Origin: Heterodontus francisci
Taxonomy: Eukaryota
Length of the DNA stretch: 64,000 nucleotides
Direction of reading: 5' to 3'
Assembly: GCF_036365525.1 (NCBI RefSeq)
Contig: NC_090399.1
Span: 8,555,558-8,619,557, forward strand
Within the stretch, counting starts at the first letter, position 1; each line of letters begins with the position of its first letter. The position numbers and the translations under genes are program-made. Shown here piece after piece: positions 4,985 through 64,000 of the stretch. Under the pieces are notes generated by a model. The model did no database searches. It was given only the letters and a program-made list of their open reading frames with translations, and was not told the DNA's origin.

Positions 4985-5720
4985 CCACAATTCTGCATCA
5001 ACCTCAAACTGGCCCAAAACTGTGTTGTCCCAATCCCATCCTGCACTAAACTGCACTTACCAATCATTCACTTGCCCTCAATGACTTATACTGGCTCCCA
5101 ATCCGACATCTATTAAATTGAGATGCTTCTCATTGCTTTCAAATCCCCCCATGGCCTTTCCTCACCTCCCTCCGCGGCATCTTCCTCGCCTCCCTCCGCG
5201 GCATCTTCCTCGCCTCCCTCCGCGGCATCTTCCTCGCCTCCCTCCGCGGCATCTTTCTCGCCTCCCTCCGCGGCATCTTCCTCGCCTCCCTCCGCGGCAT
5301 CTTCCTCGCCTCCCTCCGCGGCATCTTCCTCGCCTCCCTCCGCGGCATCTTCCTCGCCTCCCTCCGCGGCATCTTCCTCGCCTCCCTCCGCGGCATCTTC
5401 CTCGCCTCCCTCCGCGGCATCTTCCTCGCCTCCCTCCGCGGCATCTTCCTCGCCTCCCTCCGTGGCATCTTCCTCGCCTCCCTCCGCGGCATCTTCCTCA
5501 CCTCCCTCCGCGGCATCTTCCTCACCTCCCTCCGCAGCATCTTCCTCACCTCCCTCCGCAGCATCTTCCTGCCTTGTATTTTCTTCTGCTCCCTTCAGTT
5601 TTCTGTGCATCTGCCCAAACATTTGTGGTACTGCCTAAAATTTTCTCCCTAAAGTTCTCTGCTTCCTTTCCTCTCACTCCGCCTTTTTCAACATGGTTTT
5701 AGTCACCTCTATTAATCTTC
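4985..5720 (+). mobile_element. L2-type LINE fragment containing a 24-bp tandem expansion
   Basis: tacactggctccc...ttttcaaatccctccatggcc-like L2 sequence flanks the array. Confidence 0.6.
5157..5570. repeat. 24-bp GC-rich minisatellite (cctcgcctccctccgcggcatctt) x ~17
   Basis: Tandem units are directly visible; they explain the 8-aa periodic ORFs at 5113-5702. Confidence 0.95.
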
Positions 5721-14070: not shown

Positions 14071-14280
14071 AAGTACAAGAGAAAAATTTTTAATTGAACA
14101 CTAGCACAGATTTCCGGGATGCGCAACAAAAGATAGCACGCTGTGATTTATTAACACAAATCTTTAATTTTTAGCTATATCTCTGTGGTTTTTGGTTTTC
14201 CAGGCTCTCTGAGGTTTCTACTTTTTATTTAAAGATATTTTTTAATTGCCATTTTGAATATTGTAACTAAATGGACTAAC

Positions 14281-14628
14281 CTCCAACTTTGAGATTGATC
14301 ACTGCTTCCTCATAGTTTGATTTGGAGTCAATGAAACAAGTGTAGCTCCCCTCATCTGATGATATTATCTTCTTCAGTTTGAGAGAGGCATTTCCATGGG
14401 GAAACTCCTCTTTAAAAAGTTCTGTCCTCCCTTGATAAGCTTTGTCCTGCACTCCGGGTCGATCCTGTCCTTCGGTGTATAAATGAACTGGCAAAGTAAA
14501 GTCTAACTTAAACCATCGAACTTCCAGATTGACCAGGGATGTGTTTGGTACCAGTTGGCACGGTAATACAACATCGTCACTGACAGAGACTATGATGGGA
14601 TGTTCTGGTCCAATGACATGAAACTTTT
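14281..14628 (-). CDS. Butyrophilin-like gene, IgV exon (KFHVIGPEHPIIVSVSDDVVLPC...EVRWF...YQGRTELF...GNASL...SDEGSYTC...YEEAVINLKVG)
   Basis: Acceptor ttttaccag| and donor |gttagt; 348 nt, phase 1-1; F-x-V-x-GP, LPC, EVRWF, Y-x-GRT-x-L, D-x-G-x-Y-x-C and YEEA motifs characteristic of BTN/MOG IgV domains. Confidence 0.95.
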
Positions 14629-15129
14629 CTGGTAAAATATAACATTTCAAACAAAGTCAGCAGTCATAACAGACATATTATAGTTGCAACATCTTAGAAA
14701 ATATTTACAGAAATATAATAAATTTGTTTTATTTATGTTGATCTTTCAAAGATCATTTCTCTAGGAAACACGTTTACATTAATTGGAAAATGAAGAAACA
14801 TTAGATAGATTATACCTGTTACATTTTGGATTATTTACACAATAGCTTGCACAGTACATACAGTGAGCTTAAAATTCCATCAGCCTTGCCACTGATCTCC
14901 GGCCATTGCTTTGACCGGAGATTGGTGGAACCTCCAGAGAAACAGGGTAAATGCCTATTCCTGCCATTGCACTGGGAATTCAAACAGTTTCCTCCCAAAT
15001 TTACAGTGGGAGATTGGGAGAACCTGAGGAATTTCAGAGCTGGTATGTAAAAAAGGCAGGAGTGACTAAGAGGCATTCAGACCTGTAGTAAGAATGGAGG
15101 GGTAAAGTGGTAACAGGTGAGTAGTGGTA

Positions 15130-33584: not shown

Positions 33585-35536
33585 TCATAAGAACTAGGAG
33601 CAGGAGTAGGCCGTCCGGCCCCTCGAGCCTGCTCCGCCATTCAATAAGATCATGGCTGATCTTTTCGTGGACTCAGATCCACTTACCCGCGCTCCCACCG
33701 TATCCCTCAATTCCTTTATTGTTCAAAACGATATCTACCTTAGCTTTAAAGACGTTTACTGAAGAAGCGTCAACTACTTCACTGGGCAAGGAATTCCATA
33801 GATTAACAACCCTCTGGGTGAAGAAGTTCCTTCTTAATTCAGTCCTAAATCTGCTCCCTCTAATCTTGAGACTATGCCCTCTTGTTCTAGCTTCACCTGC
33901 CAGTGGAAACATCCTCTCTACTTGTATCTTATCTATTCCCTTCATGATTTTATATGTTTCTATAAGATCCCTCCTCATTCTTCTGAACTCCAATGAATAT
34001 AATCCCAATCTACTTAGTCTCTCCTCATAAACCAACCCCCTCAACTCCGGAATCAACCTAGTGAACCTCCTCTGCACCCTCTCCAGTGCCAGTATATCCT
34101 TTCTCAAGTAAGGAGACCAAAACTGCACACAGTACTCCAGGTGCGGCCTCACCGGTACCTGATACAGCTGCAACATAACCTCTCTGCTTTTAAACTCAAT
34201 CCTTTTAGCAATGAAGGACAAAATTCCATTGCCTTCCTAATTACTTGCAGACCATCCTTCTGCGATTCATGCACAAGGACACCTAGGTCCCTCTGCATAG
34301 CAGCATGCTGCAACTTTTTACCATTCAAGTAATAATCCTTTTTCCTGTTACTCCTACCAAAATGAATGACTTCACATTTATTAACATTGTATTCCATCTG
34401 CCAGACCTTTGCCCACTCACTCAATGTATCTATGTTCCTCTGCAAAGTTTCACAGTCATCTGCACACTTTGCTCTGCCACTCATCTTAGTGTCATCTGCA
34501 AACTTTGACACCCAACAAGTGGTCCCCAACTCCAAATCATCTATATAAATTGTAAATAATTGCGGTCCCAACACCGATCCCTGAGGCATACCACTAGTGA
34601 CTGATTGCCAACCAGAATAGCACTCCTTTATCCCCACTCTCTGCTTCCTGTTAGTCAACCAATTCTCTATCCATGCTAATACTTTACCCCTGACGCCATG
34701 CATCCTTATCTTATGCAGCAGCTTCTTGTGCGGCACCTCGTCGAAGGCCTTTTGGAAATCTAGGTACACCACATCCACTGGGTCCCCATTGTCCACCTTG
34801 CTCGTAATGTCATCATAGAATTCCAGAAGATTTGTCAAGCATGACCTGCCCTTCATGAACCCATGCTGTGTCTGCCCAATGGGACAATTTCTATTGAGAT
34901 GCCCTGCTATTTCTTCCTTGATAATAGACTCAAGCATCTTCCCCACTACAGAGGTTAAGCTAATCGGTCTATAATTCCCCATCTTTTGTCTACCTCCCTT
35001 TTTAAACAGTGGCGTCACATCTGCTGTTTTCCAATCAACTGGGACTACCCCAGAGTCCAGCGAATTTTGGAAAATTACTGTCAGTGCACCTGCTATTTCT
35101 CCCGCCATCTCTTTTAGTACCCTGGGATGCATTCCATCAGGGCCAGGAGACTTATCAATCCTTAGCTCCATTAGCTTGCCCAACACTACCTCTTCCGTAA
35201 TAATGATTGTTCCCAGGTCCTCACCTACGTTCGTCTCTTTGTCAATTACTGGCATGTTATTAATGTCCTCCACTGAGAAGACCGATACAAAATACCTGTT
35301 CAATGCCTCGGCCATTTCGTCATATCCCATAACTAAATTCCCCTTCTCATCCTCTAAAGGACCAAGCACAGGACCCTGGTATTGGATTTTATCTTCACAC
35401 TCTCCATCTGTATTCTAAATTCAACCATACTGTGATCACTCCTTCCAAGAGGATCCCTAACCATGAGGTCATTAATTATTCCTGTCTCATTACACAGTAC
35501 TAGATCTAGGATAGCTTTCTCCCTCGTCGGTTCCAT
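33585..35536 (-). mobile_element. Young CR1 LINE, 5'-truncated and internally deleted, with a 406-aa RT ORF
   Basis: KSPGPDGMHPRVLKE, YRPISLTS, YLDFQKAFD, PQGSVLGP and FADD; complete 3'UTR. Confidence 0.95.
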
Positions 35537-36555: not shown

Positions 36556-36794
36556 CTACAAAGCCTCATGCGATCACAGAATAGGAACCGACTGCAAACT
36601 AGAGGGAGATGAAGGTGTTCCCCGCCCCTCCCCCCCCTCCTCCTCATTAAGCTCCAACCATGCAAACTGCTTCATGTACCAACAGGAATGGACATCACCA
36701 ACCATCTCCTCCTGAGCCTCAATGTATTTGTTAGGATGGAACAAGCTTACAATCTCATGCTGGAAGCCAAGCTCAAGTTCCCCAATTATTCTCA

Positions 36795-37550
36795 ATTATA
36801 CAGTAAATGGAAAAGTCCTGGGGAAAATTGATGTCCAGAGAGATTTGGGTGTTCAGGTCCACTGTTCCCTGAAGGTGGCAACGCAGGTAAATAGAGTGGT
36901 CAAGAAGGCATACGGCATGCTTTCCTTCATCGGACGGGGCATTGAGTACAAGAGTTGGCAGGTCATGTTACAGTTGTATAGGACTTTGGTTCGGCCACAT
37001 TTGAAATACTGCGTACAGTTCTGGTCGCCACATTATCAAAAGGATGTGGATGCTTTGGAGAGGGTGCAGAGGAGGTTCACCAGGATGTTGCCTGGTATGG
37101 AGGGCGCTAGCTATGAAGAGAGGTTGAGCAGATTAGGATTATTTTCATTAGAAAGACGGAGGTTGAGGGGGGACCTGATTGAGGTGTACAAAATCATGAG
37201 AGGTATCGACAGGGTGGATAGCAAGAGGCTTTTTCCCAGAGTGGGGGTTTCAATTACTAGAGGACACGAGTTCAAAGTGAAAGGGGAAAAGTTTAGGGGG
37301 GATATGCGTGGAAAGTTCTTTACGCAGAGGGTGGTGGGCACCTGGAACGCATTGCCAGCGGAGGTGGTAGATGCGGGCACGATGGAGTCTTTTAAGATGT
37401 ATCTAGACAGATACATGAATGGGCAGGAAGAAAAGAGATACAGAACCTTAGAAAATAGGCGACATGTTTAGAGAGAGGATCTGGATCGGCGCAGGCTTGG
37501 AGGGCCGAAGGGCCTGTTCCTGTGCTGTAATTTTCTTTGTTCTTTGTTCT
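36795..37550 (+). mobile_element. Young CR1 (HER1-like) 3' part
   Basis: Uninterrupted ORF (RDLGV...LYRTLVRPHL-x-YCVQFWSP...WNALP); tail ccgaagggcctgttcctgtgctgtaattttctttgttctttgttct. Confidence 0.92.
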
Positions 37551-44126: not shown

Positions 44127-44344
44127 CTGTGAGTAAAATAGAACAAGTATGTTCTTTGAAAGTAAAAGATTCTGTTCAAATTCCTCAGATAGTTAATGAG
44201 CGCTTACTGCTTCAATTATCCTATCCAGTTATCTGTATAATGCTAGGTTTAATAATAGTCCCTAATTGCACAGTCGATACTTGAGCTATGAAGTGTGTTA
44301 AACCATCATAGACACTACTATTTTCATCAACCATAACCTATATT

Positions 44345-45004
44345 GTATCAGGCCTGTGTCCTCAGTACCTTGCTCTTTGACAGCGAGGCCTGGACAACGT
44401 ATGTCAGCCAAGAGCGACGTCTCAATTCATTCCATCTTCGCTGCCTCCGGAGAATACTTGGCATCAGGTGGCAGGACCGTATCTCCAACACAGGAGTCCT
44501 CGAGGTGGCCAACATCCCCAGCTTATACACACTACTGAGTCAGCGGCGCTTGAGATGGCTTGGCCATGTGAGCCGCATGGAAGATGGCAGGATCCCCAAA
44601 GACACATTGTACAGCGAGCTCGCCACTGGTATCAGACCCACCGACCGTCCATGTCTCCGCTTTAAAGACGTCTGCAAACGCGACATGAAATCCTGTGACA
44701 TTGATCACAAGTCGTGGGAGTCAGTTGCCAGCGTCCGCCAGAGCTGGTGGGCAGCCATAAAGGCGGGGCTAAAGTGTGGCGAGTCGAAGAGACTTAGTAG
44801 TTGGCAGGAAAAAAGAGAGGCGCAAGGGGAGAGCCAACTGTGTAACAGCCCCGACAAACAAATTTCTCTGCAGCACCTGTGGAAAAGCCTCTCACTCCAG
44901 AATTGGCCTTTATAGCCACTCCAGGCGCTGCTTCACAAACCACTGACCACCTCCAGGCGCTTATCCATTGTCTCTCGAGATAAGGAGGCCGAAGAAGAAG
45001 AAGA
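44345..45004 (+). mobile_element. Young RTE-clade LINE 3' part with TSD
   Basis: YQACVLSTLL, RCLRRILGI-x-WQD and RLRWLGHV-x-RM-x-DGRIPK; (GAA)n tail; 12-bp TSD ATAACCTATATT (44333-44344 and 45005-45016). Confidence 0.93.
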
Positions 45005-45880: not shown

Positions 45881-47217
45881 AATCAGTGAGTATGGTCCTC
45901 CAGTCAGGATCAACACTGGGATCAGTGAGTGGGAATCCCCAGTCAGGATCAACACTGGGATCAGTGAGTGGGAATCCCAGTCAGGATCAACACTGGGATC
46001 AGTGAGTGGGAATCCCCAGTCAGGATCAACACTGGGATCAGTGAGTGGGAATCCCCAGTCAGGATCAACACTGGGATCAGTGAGTGGGAATCCCCAGTCA
46101 GGATCAACACTGGGATCAGTGAGTGGGAATCCCAGTCAGGATCAACACTGGGATCAGTGAGTGGGAATCCCCAGTCAGGATCAACACTGGGATCAGTGAG
46201 TGGGAATCCCCAGTCAGGATCAACACTGGGATCAGCGAGTGAGGATCCCAGTCAGGATCAACACTGGGATCAGTGAGTGAGGATCCCCAGTCAGGATCAA
46301 CACTGGGATCAGTGAGTGGGAATCCCCAATCAGGATCAACACTGGGATCAGTGAGTGGGAATCCCCAGTCAGGATCAACACTGGGATCAGTGAGTGGGAA
46401 TCCCCAGTCAGGATCAACAATGGGATCAGTGAGTGGGAATCCCCAGTCAGGATCAACACTGGGATCAGTGAGAGAGGATCCCCAGTCAAGATCAACCCTG
46501 GGATCAGTGAGAGAGGATCCCCAGTCAGGATCAACACTGGGATCAGTGAGTGAGGATCCCAGTCAGGATCAACCCTGGGATCAGTGAGAGAGGATCCCCA
46601 GTCAGGATCAACACTGGGATCAGTGAGTGGGAATCCCCAGTCAGGATCAACACTGGGATCAGTGAGTGAGGATCCCAGTCAGGATCAACCCTGGGATCAG
46701 TGAGAGAGGATCCCCAGTCAGGATCAACACTGGGATGGTGAGTGAGAATCCCAGTCAGGATCAACACTGGGATTAGTGAGTGGGAATCCCCAGTCAGGAT
46801 CAACACTGGGATCAGTGAGTGAGGATCCCCAGTCAGGATCAACACTGGGATCAGTGAGTGGGAATCCCCAGTCAGGATCAACACTGGGATTAGTGAGAGA
46901 GGATCCCCAGTCAGGATCAACACTGGGATCAGTGAGTGAGAATCCCAGTCAGGATCAACACTGGGATTAGTGAGAGAGGATCTCAGTCAGGATCAACACT
47001 GGGATCAGTGAGTGGGAATCCCAGTCAGGATCAACACTGGGATCAGTGAGTGAGGATCCCAGTCAGGATCAACACTGGGATCAGTGAATGAGGATCCTAG
47101 TCAGGATCAACACTGGGATCAGTGAGTGAAGATCCCAGTCAGGATCAACACTGGGATCAGTGAATGAGGATCCTAGTCAGGATCAACACTGGGATCAGTG
47201 AGAGAGGATTCCCAGTG
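45881..47217. repeat. 38/39-bp minisatellite (cagtcaggatcaacactgggatcagtgagtgggaatccc) x ~34
   Basis: Tandem units are directly visible; they explain the 13-aa periodic ORFs. Confidence 0.95.
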
Positions 47218-53987: not shown

Positions 53988-54321
53988 GATGGCTTCTGGG
54001 CAGACACTCAGTGAGATTTCCTGGTGAGATTTCCTGTGGCAAAATTGTAAGTATATTCTTTATAGACATGGTTACAATTTCACCACACTGAGCGCACAGA
54101 GGAAATCTCCTCTCTGTGAGCTTTTGTGCATTCAGGATTATATTGAATCCATTGTACAGGGTGGAAGCTCACGCTCTGAGAAGGAAGAGGAAAAACTAGA
54201 TTGGACGGTGATGTATAAATAAGACAGTTGAATAGCGGGTTCTAAACATTTAGGCTTTCTTTCATTACATGCATCCAATCCCACAAATACATCAGGCATA
54301 ACTGACAGCTACAATACTCAC

Positions 54322-54441
54322 ATGTCCAGATTCTGTTTGGCGTGCTCAATGTCTCTTTTTATCTCTGGAGTGATGTAAAAATAAAGTTTCTTGGGTAATG
54401 GCAGAGGAATCATGGGAGCTCGAACTGTATCTGGGTCCTTA
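54322..54441 (-). CDS. CRAT-like exon (KDPDTVRAPMIPLPLPKKLYFYITPEIKRDIEHAKQNLD)
   Basis: ctttctag| ... |gtgagt; 120 nt; aligns to CrAT [33 protein letters not shown]. Confidence 0.95.
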
Positions 54442-55250
54442 CTAGAAAGGCCATACATGAATTTAAGGTTTTTATCTTCCATAAACAAGAACATTGATTT
54501 TTTTTTAAAACACAGCACGGCATCAATTAAAAGTTAAGTATTATACAAAGATAATGCTGGACGTTCATTATATACATATCACCTCATTCCCTACAGAGGT
54601 CAAGTGAGCCCGAGTTAAGAAACTGGTTACAGCTGTTGTCCATGTCAGTCAGTGGAGACAGTGGGCAGGGATGTGTTACTGTCGTCCCATCCAGTGGGAG
54701 ATGGAACTAACCTGCCTTACAACTGGTTCCGACCCTTCCAAATCTCACACTGACTTTTGGATTCAGCGCTCCATCCCTGTCTCCATTAAAGCACTGCCCA
54801 GGGGTTTAAACTTACAACCTCCTATTTGGGGTGTTCAGACTGATCATGGAAAACCACAAAGATATACATAGTTCTTCACACATTTCTTACTTTAAACAAA
54901 TTCCATATATTTACCAGATTAAACTGACTTCCAAATGTACCCTGAATAAAAATATCAGATTGTTCTGCCATCTCTGCAGCTATTAAATCACTCCTGACTA
55001 AACAAGAGCCATGTTTATTGTTAAGTAGAGTATAAAAGTACTCGGAATACTATTCAATGGGCTGTACATCTGCAAATTAGATTGAATTGTATCCATCAAT
55101 TAAAAACACAGATAGAAAATATTTGGGTCCAATTTCTACTCAACGCTGCATAGTAATTCTTCAGGGGTGACCATTCATGTCTAGTGTAAAGACTTAATGG
55201 CTTGTGCGAAGTTAAAAATGATGTCTGAATACAATGCTGGTGACATGGAC

Positions 55251-55716
55251 GGGTGTCATTTGTGGCTTAGTTGGTAGCACTCTTGCCTCAGAGTCAGAAG
55301 GTTGTGGGGTTCAAGTCTTACTCCAGGACTTGAACACAAATTAAAACTGACACTCCGGTACAGTCCTGAGGGAGGGCTGCACTGTCGGAGGTGTTGTCTG
55401 TTGACTGAGATGTTAAACCAAGGCCCCATCTAGCCTCTCAGGTGGACGTAAAAGACCCCAAGGCACTATTTTGAAGAAGAGCAGGGGAATTATCCCAGGT
55501 ATCTTAACCAATATTTATCCCTCAATCAACATCACTAAAACAGATTATCTGGTCATTATCACATTGCTGTTTGTGGGAGCTTGCTGTGTGTAAGTTGGCT
55601 ACCATGTATTCTACATTACAACAGTGACGACACTTCGAAAGTATTTCACTGGCTGTAAAGCATTTTGGGTTGTCCTGTGGTTGTGAAAGGTGCTCAATAA
55701 ATGCAAGTCTTTCTTT
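55251..55716 (+). mobile_element. Full-length DeuSINE (SacSINE1-like)
   Basis: A-box tggcttagttggt, B-box ggttcaagtc, Deu-like core and L2-type tail taaatgcaagtctttcttt. Confidence 0.82.
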
Positions 55717-56037
55717 ATTGGTAGACCAGTGCTGAATGCCAAAGATGCTCACTTGACTTTGCTCTGCTGCTATCCTAACAGAGGCCGTAACATAATTGAT
55801 ATAAATAAGTTAATGTCTCTATTCAAATAGCAGACAAAAGCAAACACACTATGCACATCCCCTCTATATCAACAACAGTAATTATCAGTCTTCTGAATTA
55901 AGTCAATTTTCAATCATCTGCATGCTCTCTTAAGCACAGATAATACAAGAGGAGAAAAATGGGGACACATTTAGAAGTTAAACAACATCTTAAGTAAGTC
56001 ACTAAAAAGGATTTTGCTTCATTCTGCACTTTCTTAC

Positions 56038-56138
56038 CAATAATCTAGAACATGATCTAATATGGTGACAATGGGTGGGCCCTCTGCAGAAGACTGTTCA
56101 TATATAACACCACAGGATCCATCCTCCCCGACAATGAA
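56038..56138 (-). CDS. CRAT-like active-site exon (FIVGEDGSCGVIYEQSSAEGPPIVTILDHVLDY); catalytic His replaced by Gln
   Basis: gttacag| ... |gtaag; 101 nt; aligns without gaps to CrAT FIVAEDGSCGLVYEHAAAEGPPIVTLLDYV. Not in the ORF track. Confidence 0.95.
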
Positions 56139-56929
56139 CTGTAACATAATCAGATAATCTTAGATACTCAGGTACAAGAGATATTGCAGGACATTAGTCC
56201 AGCTGGTTTATTTTCTTCATTCATACATGATATACACCAGGTAAAATTAATTTGCATTCAGAATCAGAACTAGGATAAGACAGAAATCTTGGTTACCAGG
56301 ACAACAGGGAACTTGTCAGATCAAACAAACAGATCAAAGTTTTTTTTTGAAAAGTAGAGGCTGCAGGGTTCTAGCATCTGAAGAACAATGGGTTTCACCT
56401 TCCCAGATTTTCAGATTATAAACAAGGAGTCAGGTGATTCTAAAGATGTAAATGTGCATGGTAGCTGGAAACAATGAAAATCTCAGGTGGCTCTGCTGAA
56501 GCCAGACTTGTGGACTTTGCATATTGGAAAAGGATAACAGGCTATTGACTTGTGATTCCAGATAAATGTAACAGATTTTCTGAAGATAGACAGGCTGTAA
56601 GAAAGGAGGACAACTGGCGGTGGCAGTCTTGAGAGAGAGAGGGAACGGCTGCTCTCAGAAGATTCACAGCAAAAGGCTGTGAAGACTCAAACTTGTTCTG
56701 AAAGTTGAAATTTGCAGAGAAGAAAAGACCAACAGGATCACCAGGAATTGCCTCCACAGATGTCCAGGTTGAAAGTGTTCAGAGAAATGAATGAAGAAGA
56801 TATGGATTTTTGAAAAGCTCTGGGCAATCCAACCCATTGCAACTGGGAGGAATTTGGGATTTTTAACCACAAAGATTTTTCCATCAAAGAGGATTGTGTA
56901 ATGCGTAAGTGTGGTTTTCAAGTGTTTTA

Positions 56930-57330
56930 CACATTGTACAGCGAGTTCGCCACTGGTATCAGACCCACCGGCTGTCCATGTCTCCGCTTTAAAGACGTCT
57001 GCAAACGTGACATGAAGTCCTGTGACATTGATCACAAGTTGTGGGAGTCAGTTGCCAGCGTTCGCCAGAGCTGGCGGGCAGCCATAAAGGCAGGGCTAAT
57101 GAGTAGCGAGTCGAAGAGACTTAGCAGTTGGCAGGAAAAAAGACAGAAGTGCAAGGAGAGAGCCAACTGTGTAACAGCCCCAACAAACAAATTTTTCTGC
57201 AGCACCTGTGGAAGAGCCTGTCACTCTAGAATTGGCCTTTATAGCCACTCCAGGCGCTGCTCCACACACCACTGACCACCTCCAGGCGCTTACCCATTGT
57301 CTCTCGAGACAAGGAGGCCAAAGAAGAAAT
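56930..57330 (+). mobile_element. RTE LINE 3' end
   Basis: Near-identical to 44603-45000; C2H2-like C-terminus CSTCGRACHSRIGLYSH. Confidence 0.9.
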
Positions 57331-57689
57331 AAGAAAATACTTTTCTTTGTAAATTGGACGATCAACTACTTCCAAAGTACTACTTAGTTAATGGGGATTT
57401 CTTCTAGTTTAGTTTTTCTAATAAAAGTCTTCAAATATGAAATCTTGTAATTCTTTAAATTGGGCTCCAGGTTCGTAACTCATATTTTAATGTGAATGGT
57501 CTCACTGAGATTGAAACAGTAGTGATTACAGTACTGGACAAGCAACCCAGTGAGTTTAAATTATATCATGACAAGTTCAGAAATTTAGGGAACGATCTGG
57601 CCATTTGTGGGCAGTCCGAGAATGAATGACCATGAAGGGATGCAGAGTGCCATAAAAATTCCACTGGCTCACTGCGAAGGAAACGTGCT

Positions 57690-59480
57690 TTTTTTATTCA
57701 TTCATGGGATGTGGGCATCACTGGCTAGGCCAACATTTATTGCCCATCTCTAATTGTCTTTGAGAAGGTGGTGGTGGTGCCTTATTGAACCGCTGCAGTC
57801 CATGTGGGGTAGGTACACTCACAGTGCTGTTAGGAAGGGTGATCCAGGATTTTGACCCAGGAACGGTGATATAGTTCCAAGTCAGGATGGTGTGTGGCTT
57901 GGAGGGGAACTTGCAGGTGGTGCTGTTCCTATGCATTTGCTGCCCTTGTCCTTCTAGGTGGGAGAGGTCACGGGTTTGGAAGGTACTGCCTGAGTAGCCT
58001 TGGTGAGTTGCTGCAGTGCATCTTGTCAATGTACACTCTGCTGCCACTGTGCGTCATTGGTGGAGGGAGTGAATGTTTGTGGACAGGGAGCCAATCAAGT
58101 GGGCAGCTTTGTCCTGGATGGTGTCGAGCTTCTTGAGTGTATTGCAGCTGCACTCATCCTGGCAAGTGGAGAGTATTCCATCACACTCCTGACTTGTGCC
58201 TTGTAGATGGTGGACAGGCTTTGGGGAGTTAGGAGGTGAGTTACTTGCCGCACGATTCCTAGCCTCTGACCTGCTCTTGTAGCCACGGTATTTATATGGT
58301 TACTCCAGTTCAGTTTCTGGTCAATGGTAACGCCCAGGATGTTGGTAGTGGGAGATTCAGCAATGTTAATGCTGTTGAATGTCAAGGGGGGATGGGTAGA
58401 TTCTCTCTTGTTGGAGATGGTCATTGCCTGGCACTTGTCAGGTGCAAATGTTACTTGCCACTTATCAGCCCAAGCCTGGATATTGTCCAGGTCTTGCTGC
58501 ATTTCTACACGGACTGCTTCAGTATCTGAGGAGTCGTGAATGGTGCTGAACATTGTGCAATCATCAGCGAACATCCCCACTTCTGACCTTATGATTGAAG
58601 GAAGGTCATTGATGAAGCAGCTGAAGATGGCTGGGCCTAGGACACTACCCTGAGGAACTCCTGCAGTAATGTCCTGGTGACCTCCACCAACCATAATCAT
58701 CTACTTTTGTGCTAGGGATGACTCCAAACAGTAGAGAGTTTTCCCCCTGATTCCCATTGACTCCAGTTTTGCTAGGGCTCCTTGATATCATACTCAGTCA
58801 AATGCTGCCTTGATGTCAAGGGCAGTCACTCTCACCTCACCTCTTGAGTTCAGCTCTTTTGTCCATGTTTGAACCAAGGCTGTAATGAGGTCAGGAGCTG
58901 AGTGGCCCTGGCAGAACCCAAATTGAGCGTCACTGAGCAGATTATTGCTAAGCAAGTGCCGCTTGATAGCACTGTCAACGACACCTTCCATCACTTTACT
59001 GATGATTGAGAGTAGACTGATGGGGCAGTAATTGGCCAGGTTGGATTTGTCCTGCTTTTTGTGTACAGGACATACCTGGGCAATTTTTCACATTGTCAGG
59101 TAGATGCCAGTGTTGTAGCTGTACTGGAACAGCTTGGCTAGGGGCGCAGCAAGTTCTGGAGCACAAGTCTTCAATACTGTTGCTGGAATTTTGTCAGGGT
59201 CGTAGCCTTTGTAGTATCCAGTGCCTTCAGTCATTTCTTGACATCATGTGGAGTGAATCCAACTGGCTGAAGACTGGCATCTGTGATGCTGGGAACTTCA
59301 GGAGGGGGGCCGAGATGGATCATCCACTTGGCACTTCTGGCTGAAGATTGTTGCAAATGCTTCAGCCTTATCATTCGCACTGATGTGCTGGGCTCCCCCA
59401 TCATTGAGGATGAAGATATTTGTGGAGCCACCTCCTCCAGTTAGTTGTTTAATTGTCCACCACCATTCACGACTGGATTT
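57690..59480 (-). mobile_element. LINE family B, longest copy (RT domain to 3' end)
   Basis: AQFGF, ALDIKAAFD, GVPQGSVLGP and MFADD; family B tail. Confidence 0.9.
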
Positions 59481-60124
59481 CTACCAGGTCTGGCCTAGTC
59501 ATGACTCTAGTCCCACTGTCAGGTTGATGCTCTCGGTTGTAAAAAAAAAACAAGTCGGCAAGGCAACTAGGGACGAGGGTAATAAATGTGACCTTGGCAT
59601 CATTGTTCACATCCCAAGGATAAATTATTTTCAAAAATATTCCCTGGACTATCCAATCATCTCTTATCAATTATTTATCCCCAACCTTTACATTCTACTC
59701 AACCGGATATCAATCTACTCTTATTTTTGTGAAGAACCCAATGAACACAGTAAACAAAGTCTATATGTCCCCGCACTCCTGGTGTAAGAAGAGTGTAAAC
59801 GGTACAAATTGTGTGCCCGGCAGAGGAGCCATTATCTTCATGCAAGGAATGATAAAACAGCTAGTATTCATTTATCTAACTTCGCACATGCAGCAAGCAT
59901 GTAACTAGCACACACTTCCTGTACAAATCACATTGAGCTCCCACATGTAATAGCTCCCAGCACTGGATCGATATGGAATTTAATGCTTTAAGACATTGTA
60001 AATAATAATACTTCTGAATGCTCAATGCAATTTCTTTATGGAAAGCATTTCACTGAGGGCATCAAGGAACTACACCTCTTTTTACAGTATAATGAGTTCA
60101 GCGTGCTGCCTCGGTCTCTTGTAC

Positions 60125-60303
60125 CTGCAGAGTTTTGTCAAACCAACGGTTTCCACTGTTCGAGTAGCTTCCTCCTCCATGCAGCATCTGAGCTGCCATG
60201 CGGCTGGTGTACTTCTCCTCAGAGATCTTCAGGACTGGAGAATCGAGACACACGGTGAAAATACTCTTCTGAATGGCCCGCACCGATTCTCTGTTCAGTT
60301 TGT
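60125..60303 (-). CDS. CRAT-like exon (DKLNRESVRAIQKSIFTVCLD...QMLHGGGSYSNSGNRWFDKTLQ)
   Basis: tcctcag| ... |gtac; 179 nt; LHGGG and NRWFDK motifs. Confidence 0.96.
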
Positions 60304-60354
60304 CTGAGGAAGATATCAATTGCTGTGTTACAGAAGGGAAAGTAAAAAATAAAG

Positions 60355-62624: not shown

Positions 62625-62669
62625 CTGCAAAGAGAGTTAGTGACAACCATCAACAGCATCAGTGAAACC

Positions 62670-64000
62670 CAAAGAATTCCATTGCAACAGAGCCTCAGAA
62701 TAAGCAATAATTCCCACAGAATTACACTGTAACACAGCCTCAGAATAAGCAATAAATCCCACAGAATTACACTGTAATACAGCCTCAGAATAAGCAATAA
62801 ATCCCACAGAACTACACTGTAACACAGCCTCAGAATAAGCAATAAATCCCACAGAACTACACTGCAACACAGCCTCAGAATAAGCAATTGACCCCACAGA
62901 ATTACACTGTAACACAGCCTCAGAATAAGCAATAAACCCCACAGAATTACACTGTAACACAGCCTCAGAATAAGCAATAAATCCCACAGAACTACACTGT
63001 AACACAGCCTCAGAATATCCAATAAATCCCACAGAATTACACTGTAACACAGCCTCAGAATAACCAATAAACCCCACAGAAGTACACTGTAACAGCCTCA
63101 GAATAAGCAATGAATCCCACAGAATTACACTGTAACACAGCCTCAGAATAAGCAATAAATCCCACAGAATTACACTGTAACACAGCCTCAGAATATCCAA
63201 TAAATCCCACAGAATTACACTGTAACACAGCCTCAGAATAACCAATAAACCCCACAGAAGTACACTGTAACAGCCTCAGAATAAGCAATAAATCCCACAG
63301 AATTACACTGAAACACAGCCTCAGAATAAGCAATAAATCCCACAGAACTACACTGTAACACAGCCTCAGAATAAGCAATAAATCCCACAGAACTACACTG
63401 CAACACAGCCTCAGAATATCCAATAAATCCCACAGAATTACACTGTAACACAGCCTCTGAATAAGCAATAAATCCCACAGAATTACACTGTAACAGAGCC
63501 TCAGAATATCCAATTGACCCCACAGAATTACACTGTAACACAGCCTCAGAATATCCAATAAATCCCACAGAATTACACTGTAACACAGCCTCAGAATAAG
63601 CAATAAATCCCACAGAATTACACTGTAACACAGCCTCAGAATATCCAATAAATCCCACAGAATTAGCCTGTAACACAGCCTCAGAATAAGCAATAAATCC
63701 CACAGAATTACACTGTAACACAGCCTCTGAATAAGCAATAAATCCCACAGAATTACACTGTAACAGAGCCTCAGAATATCCAATTGACCCCACAGAATTA
63801 CACTGTAACACAGCCTCAGAATATCCAATAAATCCCACAGAATTACACTGTAACACAGCCTCAGAATATCTAATTAACCCCACAGAATTACACTGTAACA
63901 CAGCCTCAGAATATCCAATAAACCCCACAGAATTACACTGTAACACAGCCTCAGAATATCCAATTGACCCCACAGAATTACACTGTAACACAGCCTCAGA
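62670..64000. repeat. 45-bp minisatellite (cacagcctcagaataagcaataaatcccacagaattacactgtaa) x >=29, running off the window
   Basis: Tandem units are directly visible; they explain the 15-aa periodic ORFs. Confidence 0.95.

Follow-up and report, generated by a model that had tools for sequence, protein, structure and literature searches.

Carnitine and choline acyltransferases are textbook examples of histidine-dependent enzymes, and we know of no described natural member of either group that lacks the histidine. A gene of the horn shark, Heterodontus francisci, that resembles carnitine acetyltransferase (CrAT) encodes glutamine at this position. This raises the question of whether the locus is a decaying duplicate, an enzyme with altered chemistry or a protein that has turned the CrAT fold to another use. 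The gene lies within a 64,000-nucleotide stretch of DNA, referred to here as the window, which contains zero N. The locus itself is not new, being annotated by NCBI and UniProt as 'CRAT-like' or 'cratb'. It is the horn shark ortholog of an ancient CRAT paralog that is transcribed and spliced, has kept its fold and is under selection. Judged from its residues, the protein most likely represents a CrAT fold that selection has maintained in a non-catalytic or re-purposed form.

The catalytic-loop exon and its gene

The catalytic-loop exon (exon c) is 101 nt long and lies on the minus strand at 56138-56038, reading FIVGEDGSCGVIYEQSSAEGPPIVTILDHVLDY and supplying residues 334-366 of the database protein P0485 (XP_067865496.1, 'carnitine O-acetyltransferase-like isoform X1', Heterodontus francisci, 631 aa). 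The flanking sequence ends in ttacag upstream and begins with gtaaga downstream. The preliminary description of this DNA had the coordinates of the exon right and gave no strand. The plus-strand reading of 56038-56138 contains only stops and was rejected, the gene being on the minus strand. The codon CAG at 56096-56094 (minus strand) encodes Gln at residue 348 of P0485, opposite the catalytic His343 of CrAT. When compared by phmmer, the 33 residues of exon c align end to end with residues 308-340 of human CrAT and 300-332 of mouse CrAT in crystal numbering (E = 2.7e-11). The Q stands opposite the H of YEH, which is residue 343 in the 626-residue mammalian CRAT. The glutamine at the catalytic position, as originally proposed, is thus confirmed by both the minus-strand translation and the alignment. 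Exon c alone also matches Pfam PF00755 (22.1 bits, E = 6.6e-5). The general-base His343 of the E-H-x3-[DE]-[GA] loop is absent from the horn shark protein, which has Gln instead and which fits the PROSITE-type signature of the family at every other position.

Nine minus-strand exons of the gene are present in the window, with canonical AG/GT sites, compatible phases and about 416 unbroken codons leading to a TAG stop. All nine whole-codon exon peptides are exact substrings of P0485 and together span residues 216-631. The earlier statement that the rest of the gene is intact holds for this part, where the frame is unbroken and the match to P0485 exact; about 215 N-terminal codons fall outside the window, beyond its end at 64000. 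The window was searched exon by exon, and the whole-protein analyses used P0485. The first CrAT-like exon inside the window, exon a (62624-62450, 175 nt, FFHLDVYNSDG...NTLMK, residues 216-273), has the acceptor cag before TTC and the donor gtagaa after G. It is followed on the same strand by exon b (60303-60125, 179 nt, KLNRESVRAIQKS...RWFDKTLQ, residues 275-333) and, beyond exon c, by exon d (54441-54322, 120 nt, KDPDTVRAPMIPLPLPKKLYFYITPEIKRDIEHAKQNLD, residues 368-406). Exon e (52088-51966, 123 nt, LVNDLDISCFTYRNFGKDFPK...LAYF, residues 408-447) holds the CoA 3'-phosphate lysines K419 and K423 (CrAT numbering). Exon f (49751-49616, 136 nt, MYKELCATCESVSLRNFHLGRTD..., residues 449-493) has Cys (TGC, 49726-49724) in place of the carnitine-binding Tyr452, and exon g (45667-45605, 63 nt, LGQKIAALRKAVDCHGAYTDM) supplies residues 494-514. 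Exon h (44126-43989, 138 nt, ALKGMAIDRHLLGLKLQ...HWRLSTGQ, residues 515-560) has Gly (GGA, 43994-43992) in place of Ser554 of STS. The terminal exon i (38847-38632, residues 561-631) encodes ...CFGPMVPDGYGVWYNP...LVLETSRQTA before the stop codon TAG at 38634-38632 and is without the peroxisomal -[AS]KL signal.

The window also contains several repeats and other elements. An intronic minisatellite at 45900-47216, composed of 34 copies of 39-bp units with 93% matches, lies between exons f and g. Another, with about 30 copies of 45-bp units, occupies 62668-64000 upstream of exon a and runs off the window end; both give long spurious ORFs. At 5158-5574, 17 copies of a 24-bp unit (97% matches) follow one another in tandem; four frames are open through this array, which yields repetitive pseudo-ORFs. 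Fragments of LINE-type reverse transcriptases and of related retroelements are located in introns and downstream, on the minus strand at 34149-35369 and 58095-58700 and on the plus strand at 36722-37471 and 44343-44915. On the strand of the CRAT-like gene and some 24 kb downstream of it, an open exon-like stretch at 14276-14650 (minus) matches the immunoglobulin V-set (Pfam PF07686, E = 5e-12) and has a butyrophilin or B7-like look; it could help synteny or paralogon analysis. At 56.9-59.5 kb, read depth is in the millions in all four of the runs described below.

Four public read runs, comprising DNA and RNA from three organisms (A, B and C), were compared with positions 54320-60310. Two RNA contigs, one of 1086 nt from organism A (record 24, depth 211) and one of 2526 nt from organism B (record 17, depth 395), run exactly from 60125 into 56138 and from 56038 into 54441, which links exon c to exons b and d; neither has a single differing letter in the catalytic exon. 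Organism B differs from the window at exon positions 54400, 60179, 60206 and 60254, and because of these differences it represents an independent source. The DNA contig of organism A spans 55683-56301 and may derive from the assembly's own sample. The DNA contig of the more distant organism C has 7 differences in the catalytic exon, 56068 being the one listed. The gene is therefore transcribed and spliced at the predicted sites. The confirmation of CAG in reads that the preliminary description had called for is provided by DNA and by the spliced RNA of two organisms. Because CAG stands in spliced RNA too, there is no RNA editing back to His.

Distribution and ancestry of the paralog

A search of a 50%-clustered protein library with the single exon returned mostly fragments; the CrAT-like proteins included four YEQ representatives and one YER representative, and one of the former was the Salmo trutta 'carnitine O-acetyltransferase b'. 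The paralog appears in the sources as 'CRAT-like', as 'cratb' in ray-finned fishes and as 'CACP acetyltransferase'. The possibility had been raised that related sharks all have His, but Gln occupies the site in 12/12 shark and 4/4 batoid orthologs. Among teleost cratb sequences (n=119), the His343 site is Gln in 102, His in 10 (cypriniforms and a mormyrid), Pro in 3 and Ala in 2, with Ala or Pro occurring in some percomorphs. Elsewhere, the paralog was found with Gln at the site in bichir, paddlefish, sturgeon, gar, bowfin, coelacanth, lungfish, caecilian, squamates (lizards and a snake) and turtles, with Ala in salamanders, and also in birds. Dozens of species have intact orthologs, and of the jawed-vertebrate classes only mammals are not represented among them. 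Protein searches revealed no member in mammals or frogs, which is absence of evidence only.

The window copy shares 92-100% identity per well-aligned exon with the copies of other sharks and about 61% with canonical shark CRAT. Individual species have both the paralog and a canonical CRAT, the latter with His343, Tyr452, S-T-S and -[AS]KL at its C-terminus. For sharks this rests on five species other than the horn shark, namely Stegostoma, Hemiscyllium, Heptranchias and two Chiloscyllium. The two types are also found together in Rhinoraja, gar, bowfin, coelacanth, caecilian, salamander, turtle and lizard.

A careful maximum-likelihood tree of 50 rows (LG+C20+F+G4 by PMSF; supports are ultrafast bootstrap/SH-aLRT) was built without bird sequences and without the three longest invertebrate rows. 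P0072 and P0089 were rejected as invertebrate outgroups and removed from this tree, as they are divergent bird orthologs. The paralog forms a clade (B) with 100/100 support, and the window's protein falls inside its shark/ray subclade (100/99). The 'YEQ clade' that the preliminary description had envisaged thus exists, is monophyletic and is far larger than expected. Canonical CRAT forms clade A (95/87), and a quick tree of 78 rows agrees with the careful tree. Both clades largely follow the species tree, with cartilaginous fishes branching first. Because A and B mirror the species tree in this way, the duplication is older than the split between cartilaginous and bony vertebrates. The loss of the catalytic residues dates to more than 400 million years ago.

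Some members of the clade depart from the common pattern. The bird 'CRAT-like' orthologs (P0072, P0089 and P0430-P0444) are extremely divergent, with a stem branch of about 1.85 changes per site. They are rich in G, R, P and A; the His site is Pro, within YDP, and STS is replaced by CTV or CTL. This divergence may reflect GC-biased evolution or relaxation in archosaurs. Cratb proteins of cypriniforms and a mormyrid (P0466 from Danio rerio, P0228, P0238, P0254 and P0252) have His at the site in an otherwise B-type context, with LYEHATAEGPPI, RTG and no Tyr452. By parsimony, the cypriniform and mormyrid histidines would represent two independent reversions from Gln. The zebrafish is atypical of its clade at this site.

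The 'CRAT-like' proteins of cyclostomes (lamprey P0278 and P0279, hagfish P0270 and P0280, and their cluster mates) have Arg at the His position in 16/16 sequences checked. Two paralogs per species are found in three lamprey and two hagfish genera. In common with the jawed-vertebrate paralog, these proteins lack both the catalytic His and Tyr452, and they are sister to B in the careful tree (100/96), although their branches are long and the grouping may be an artefact. They differ in having Arg rather than Gln and two copies per species, and one lamprey paralog keeps STS. No His-type cyclostome CRAT was found in protein searches. Should there be none, CrAT activity in these animals might have to come from the forms without His.

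Fold, active site and constraint

P0485 matches Pfam PF00755 above the gathering score, with 635 bits over profile positions 1-573 of 574. Its AlphaFold2 model, calculated from a 71-sequence alignment, has a pLDDT of 83.4 and a pTM of 0.85, with residues 1-37 disordered. Superposition of the predicted model on human CrAT 1NM8 gives TM scores of 0.91/0.97, an RMSD of 1.7 A and 63% identity. The best Foldseek matches are the CrAT structures 1NM8 and 1NDB (TM 0.90-0.97), followed by ChAT, CrOT and CPT2. According to the model, the complete two-domain CrAT fold with its central tunnel is kept. The C-terminus, ...SRQTA, carries no PTS1 (-[AS]KL), and PTS1 is missing in clade B. The absence of PTS1 from zebrafish Cratb is the only trait of the paralog that was found published (PMC8919083). 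Arg/Lys occur 5 times and Asp/Glu not at all in the first 45 residues of P0485, a composition resembling that of a mitochondrial presequence, and it is from this N-terminal composition only that a mitochondrial location is suggested.

The carnitine carboxylate ligands of CrAT are Tyr452, Ser454, Thr465 and Arg518. In the CrAT structure papers of the Tong laboratory, Ser554 reportedly stabilises the transition state (oxyanion) and Tyr452 is said to be a carnitine-carboxylate ligand. The Foldseek matches include, by its title, an S554A/M564G mutant structure of CrAT (PDB 2H3W). H343 acts as the general base, K419 and K423 bind the CoA 3'-phosphate, and D430 and E453 lie at the pantetheine arm (review PMC11852590). 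The equivalent His473 is described as essential in CPT1 (Morillas 2001, as cited in PMC6092487).

These sites were tabulated in mouse numbering for 26 rows of canonical clade A and 41 rows of paralog clade B. His343 is invariant in A (26/26), while B has Q in 32 rows, H in 4, A in 4 and P in 1. Tyr452 is present in 25/26 rows of A and is never Tyr in B, which has C in 30, S in 4, A in 3, T in 3 and N in 1. Ser554 is likewise invariant in A (26/26) and is replaced by Gly in 41/41 rows of B, a residue that is invariant in the clade outside birds. Position 454 is S in 26/26 rows of A and variable in B (S/T/I/V/M), position 552 is S in 24 rows of A and variable in B (R/S/L/H), and position 569 is V in 23 rows of A and L, M or Q in B, with Met in the window's protein. 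In contrast to these replacements, B retains W102, Y107, E347, K419, K423, S456, T465, R518, T553, Q555 and M564. Among the CoA-binding residues, K419 is kept in 38/41 rows and K423 in 40/41, position 430 is D or N and position 453 is E or D. Among the positions that bind the carnitine carboxylate, 452 has changed from Tyr to Cys here and 454 is variable, while Thr465 and Arg518 are kept. By alignment, then, the horn shark gene has lost His343 (to Gln), Ser554 (to Gly), Tyr452 (to Cys) and PTS1.

The differences between A and B at these sites indicate that the CoA side of the tunnel is preserved and that its carnitine and reaction-centre side has been remodelled. On the 78-row tree as a whole, 8 changes are required at site 343; B accounts for at least 6, and two returns to His are among them. 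Since the site may be Q, A, P or H within B, no particular side chain appears to be needed there, and a new chemical function of Gln is accordingly less likely. The residues around the site remain under constraint, as would be expected if ligands are still bound.

Constraint is also evident over the whole protein. In pairwise comparisons across 13 matched taxa, identity averages 69.6% in B vs 79.9% in A, and the divergence of B relative to CRAT is mostly 1.3-1.6 and about 1 among sharks. Among 586 core columns, 196 are invariant in B vs 275 in A. At 13 positions, a residue that is invariant in A has been fixed to another in B: G121A, M152K, H207R, L241W, Q242K, N244D, R382Y, N384Y, A431S, I511L, L531G, S554G and S594C. 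Among the exon differences listed for organisms B and C, 10/13 are synonymous, a proportion that is indicative only. Taken from such comparisons, purifying selection on the paralog is clear. The view of the preliminary description that this is not a decaying pseudogene is borne out by the pairwise identity, the invariant columns and the mostly synonymous differences listed.

Possible function and significance

The best explanation as a whole, and probably the correct one, is that this is an ancient, maintained CRAT paralog that has lost its transferase activity and still binds CoA or acyl-CoA. Loss of catalysis is suggested by homology, with mutagenesis in relatives as the guide. Under this explanation, acetyl transfer between CoA and carnitine would no longer proceed at a meaningful rate. 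The preserved residues of the CoA tunnel (K419, K423, S456, T553, Q555 and M564) would still let the non-catalytic protein bind CoA or short acyl-CoA, and the carnitine side of the tunnel would have been remodelled and not simply have decayed. By such binding, the protein might work as a sensor, as a buffer or as a regulator, probably inside mitochondria. A more tentative extension, which may well prove too broad, would unite all members of the cratb/CRAT-like lineage, and perhaps the Arg-type proteins of cyclostomes with them, in one hitherto unrecognised family of CrAT-derived pseudoenzymes with an age of more than 450 million years. Its members would serve as a matrix sensor or buffer of the acyl-CoA/CoA pool, binding acetyl- or short acyl-CoA without turnover, and the family would have been lost in mammals and apparently frogs.

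The conserved E347, T465, R518, T553, Q555 and M564 and the invariant Gly554 could equally indicate a surviving, altered chemistry. The protein would then still be an enzyme, whose remodelled pocket (Gly554; Cys/Ser/Thr/Ala 452; Leu/Met/Gln 569) serves another acceptor or mechanism, for example with a different base, by substrate assistance or through hydrolysis of acyl-CoA. This fits the strong conservation of the reaction-centre neighbours and of both tunnel walls, as well as the 13 clade-specific replacements, which speak for new constraints and not for mere loss. It also fits the cyclostomes, from which protein searches yield only Arg-type proteins. CPT1C provides a precedent within the family for non-canonical activity (PMC6092487), and USP53/54 are described as 'pseudoenzymes' that later proved active (PMC12037411). 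However, the variation of the His-site residue (Q/A/P/H), with its repeated changes within B, means that no single side chain there does the chemistry, and the base and the oxyanion-stabilising Ser are gone together. Moreover, the fixed replacements include no clade-wide new His or Glu, and the only new Lys residues are M152K and Q242K. An altered enzyme is therefore considered unlikely, though it keeps some weight.

The E3-binding protein of pyruvate dehydrogenase, which derives from the E2 acyltransferase of that complex, is a model for yet another fate, that of a structural or scaffolding subunit with a new protein-protein interface and a substrate tunnel that has become irrelevant. The clustering of fixed replacements outside the catalytic motifs, at 241-244 (L>W, Q>K, N>D) and 382-384 (R>Y, N>Y), would suit such a role. 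The retention of K419, K423, S456 and Q555 in 38-41/41 rows is hard to explain with an irrelevant tunnel, and there is no known partner, which makes a scaffold quite improbable. Finally, the gene might be a decaying duplicate, the CAG might be a sequencing or assembly error, or RNA editing might restore His. The loss of catalytic residues and the very long, compositionally odd branch of the bird orthologs are all that speak for these readings. Against them stand the intact frame, the canonical splice sites, the CAG in the spliced RNA of two organisms, the intact orthologs in dozens of species and a divergence just 1.3-1.6 times that of CRAT. Pseudogene, error and editing are effectively excluded.

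The horn shark protein shares with canonical CrAT (human 1NM8, mouse 1NDB) full-length PF00755, the fold, K419/K423, E347, T465, R518, T553, Q555, the acyl-gate residue M564 and a basic N-terminal presequence. It differs in His343 to Gln, Ser554 to Gly, Tyr452 to Cys, Val569 to Met, the lack of PTS1 and its placement in a separate clade (100/100). Teleost cratb (Salmo trutta A0A674EIE8, Danio rerio NP_001004594) belongs to the orthologous clade, with 70-82% identity per exon, and shares with the horn shark gene Q343 (102/119), Cys452, Gly554 and the lack of PTS1. Cypriniforms, including zebrafish, and the mormyrid differ in having His, yet they keep Gly554. CPT1C also has the carnitine-acyltransferase fold, with a canonical activity about 100-fold lower and non-canonical roles, but it keeps the catalytic His470, which is required for its function (PMC6092487). 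Furthermore, CPT1C arose in mammals within the CPT1 branch and is a membrane-bound protein of the ER, whereas the horn shark gene is ancient and has lost the His.

No report of the missing His in cratb or CRAT-like proteins, nor of how old and how widespread the loss of the catalytic residues is, was found in the searched literature, subscription journals lying outside the search. The few papers that name cratb treat it as a peroxisome-pathway gene or a CRAT enzyme gene. Fish transcriptome papers place the paralog in the peroxisome/CRAT pathway despite its lack of PTS1 and its probable lack of CRAT activity. If the pseudoenzyme reading is true, fish 'omics' papers and pathway maps miscount the paralog as CRAT activity. 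In the zebrafish, a standard model, His has secondarily reappeared at the site, and this may be the reason that the trait was overlooked. The same circumstance makes His-type zebrafish and Q-type medaka or salmon a natural contrast. The His, the oxyanion Ser and the carnitine-binding Tyr are all gone, yet the protein is selected from sharks to turtles and expressed, as would be expected of an enzyme fold turned to another use. The paralog is thus a candidate regulator of acyl-CoA metabolism, and one that mammals apparently lack.
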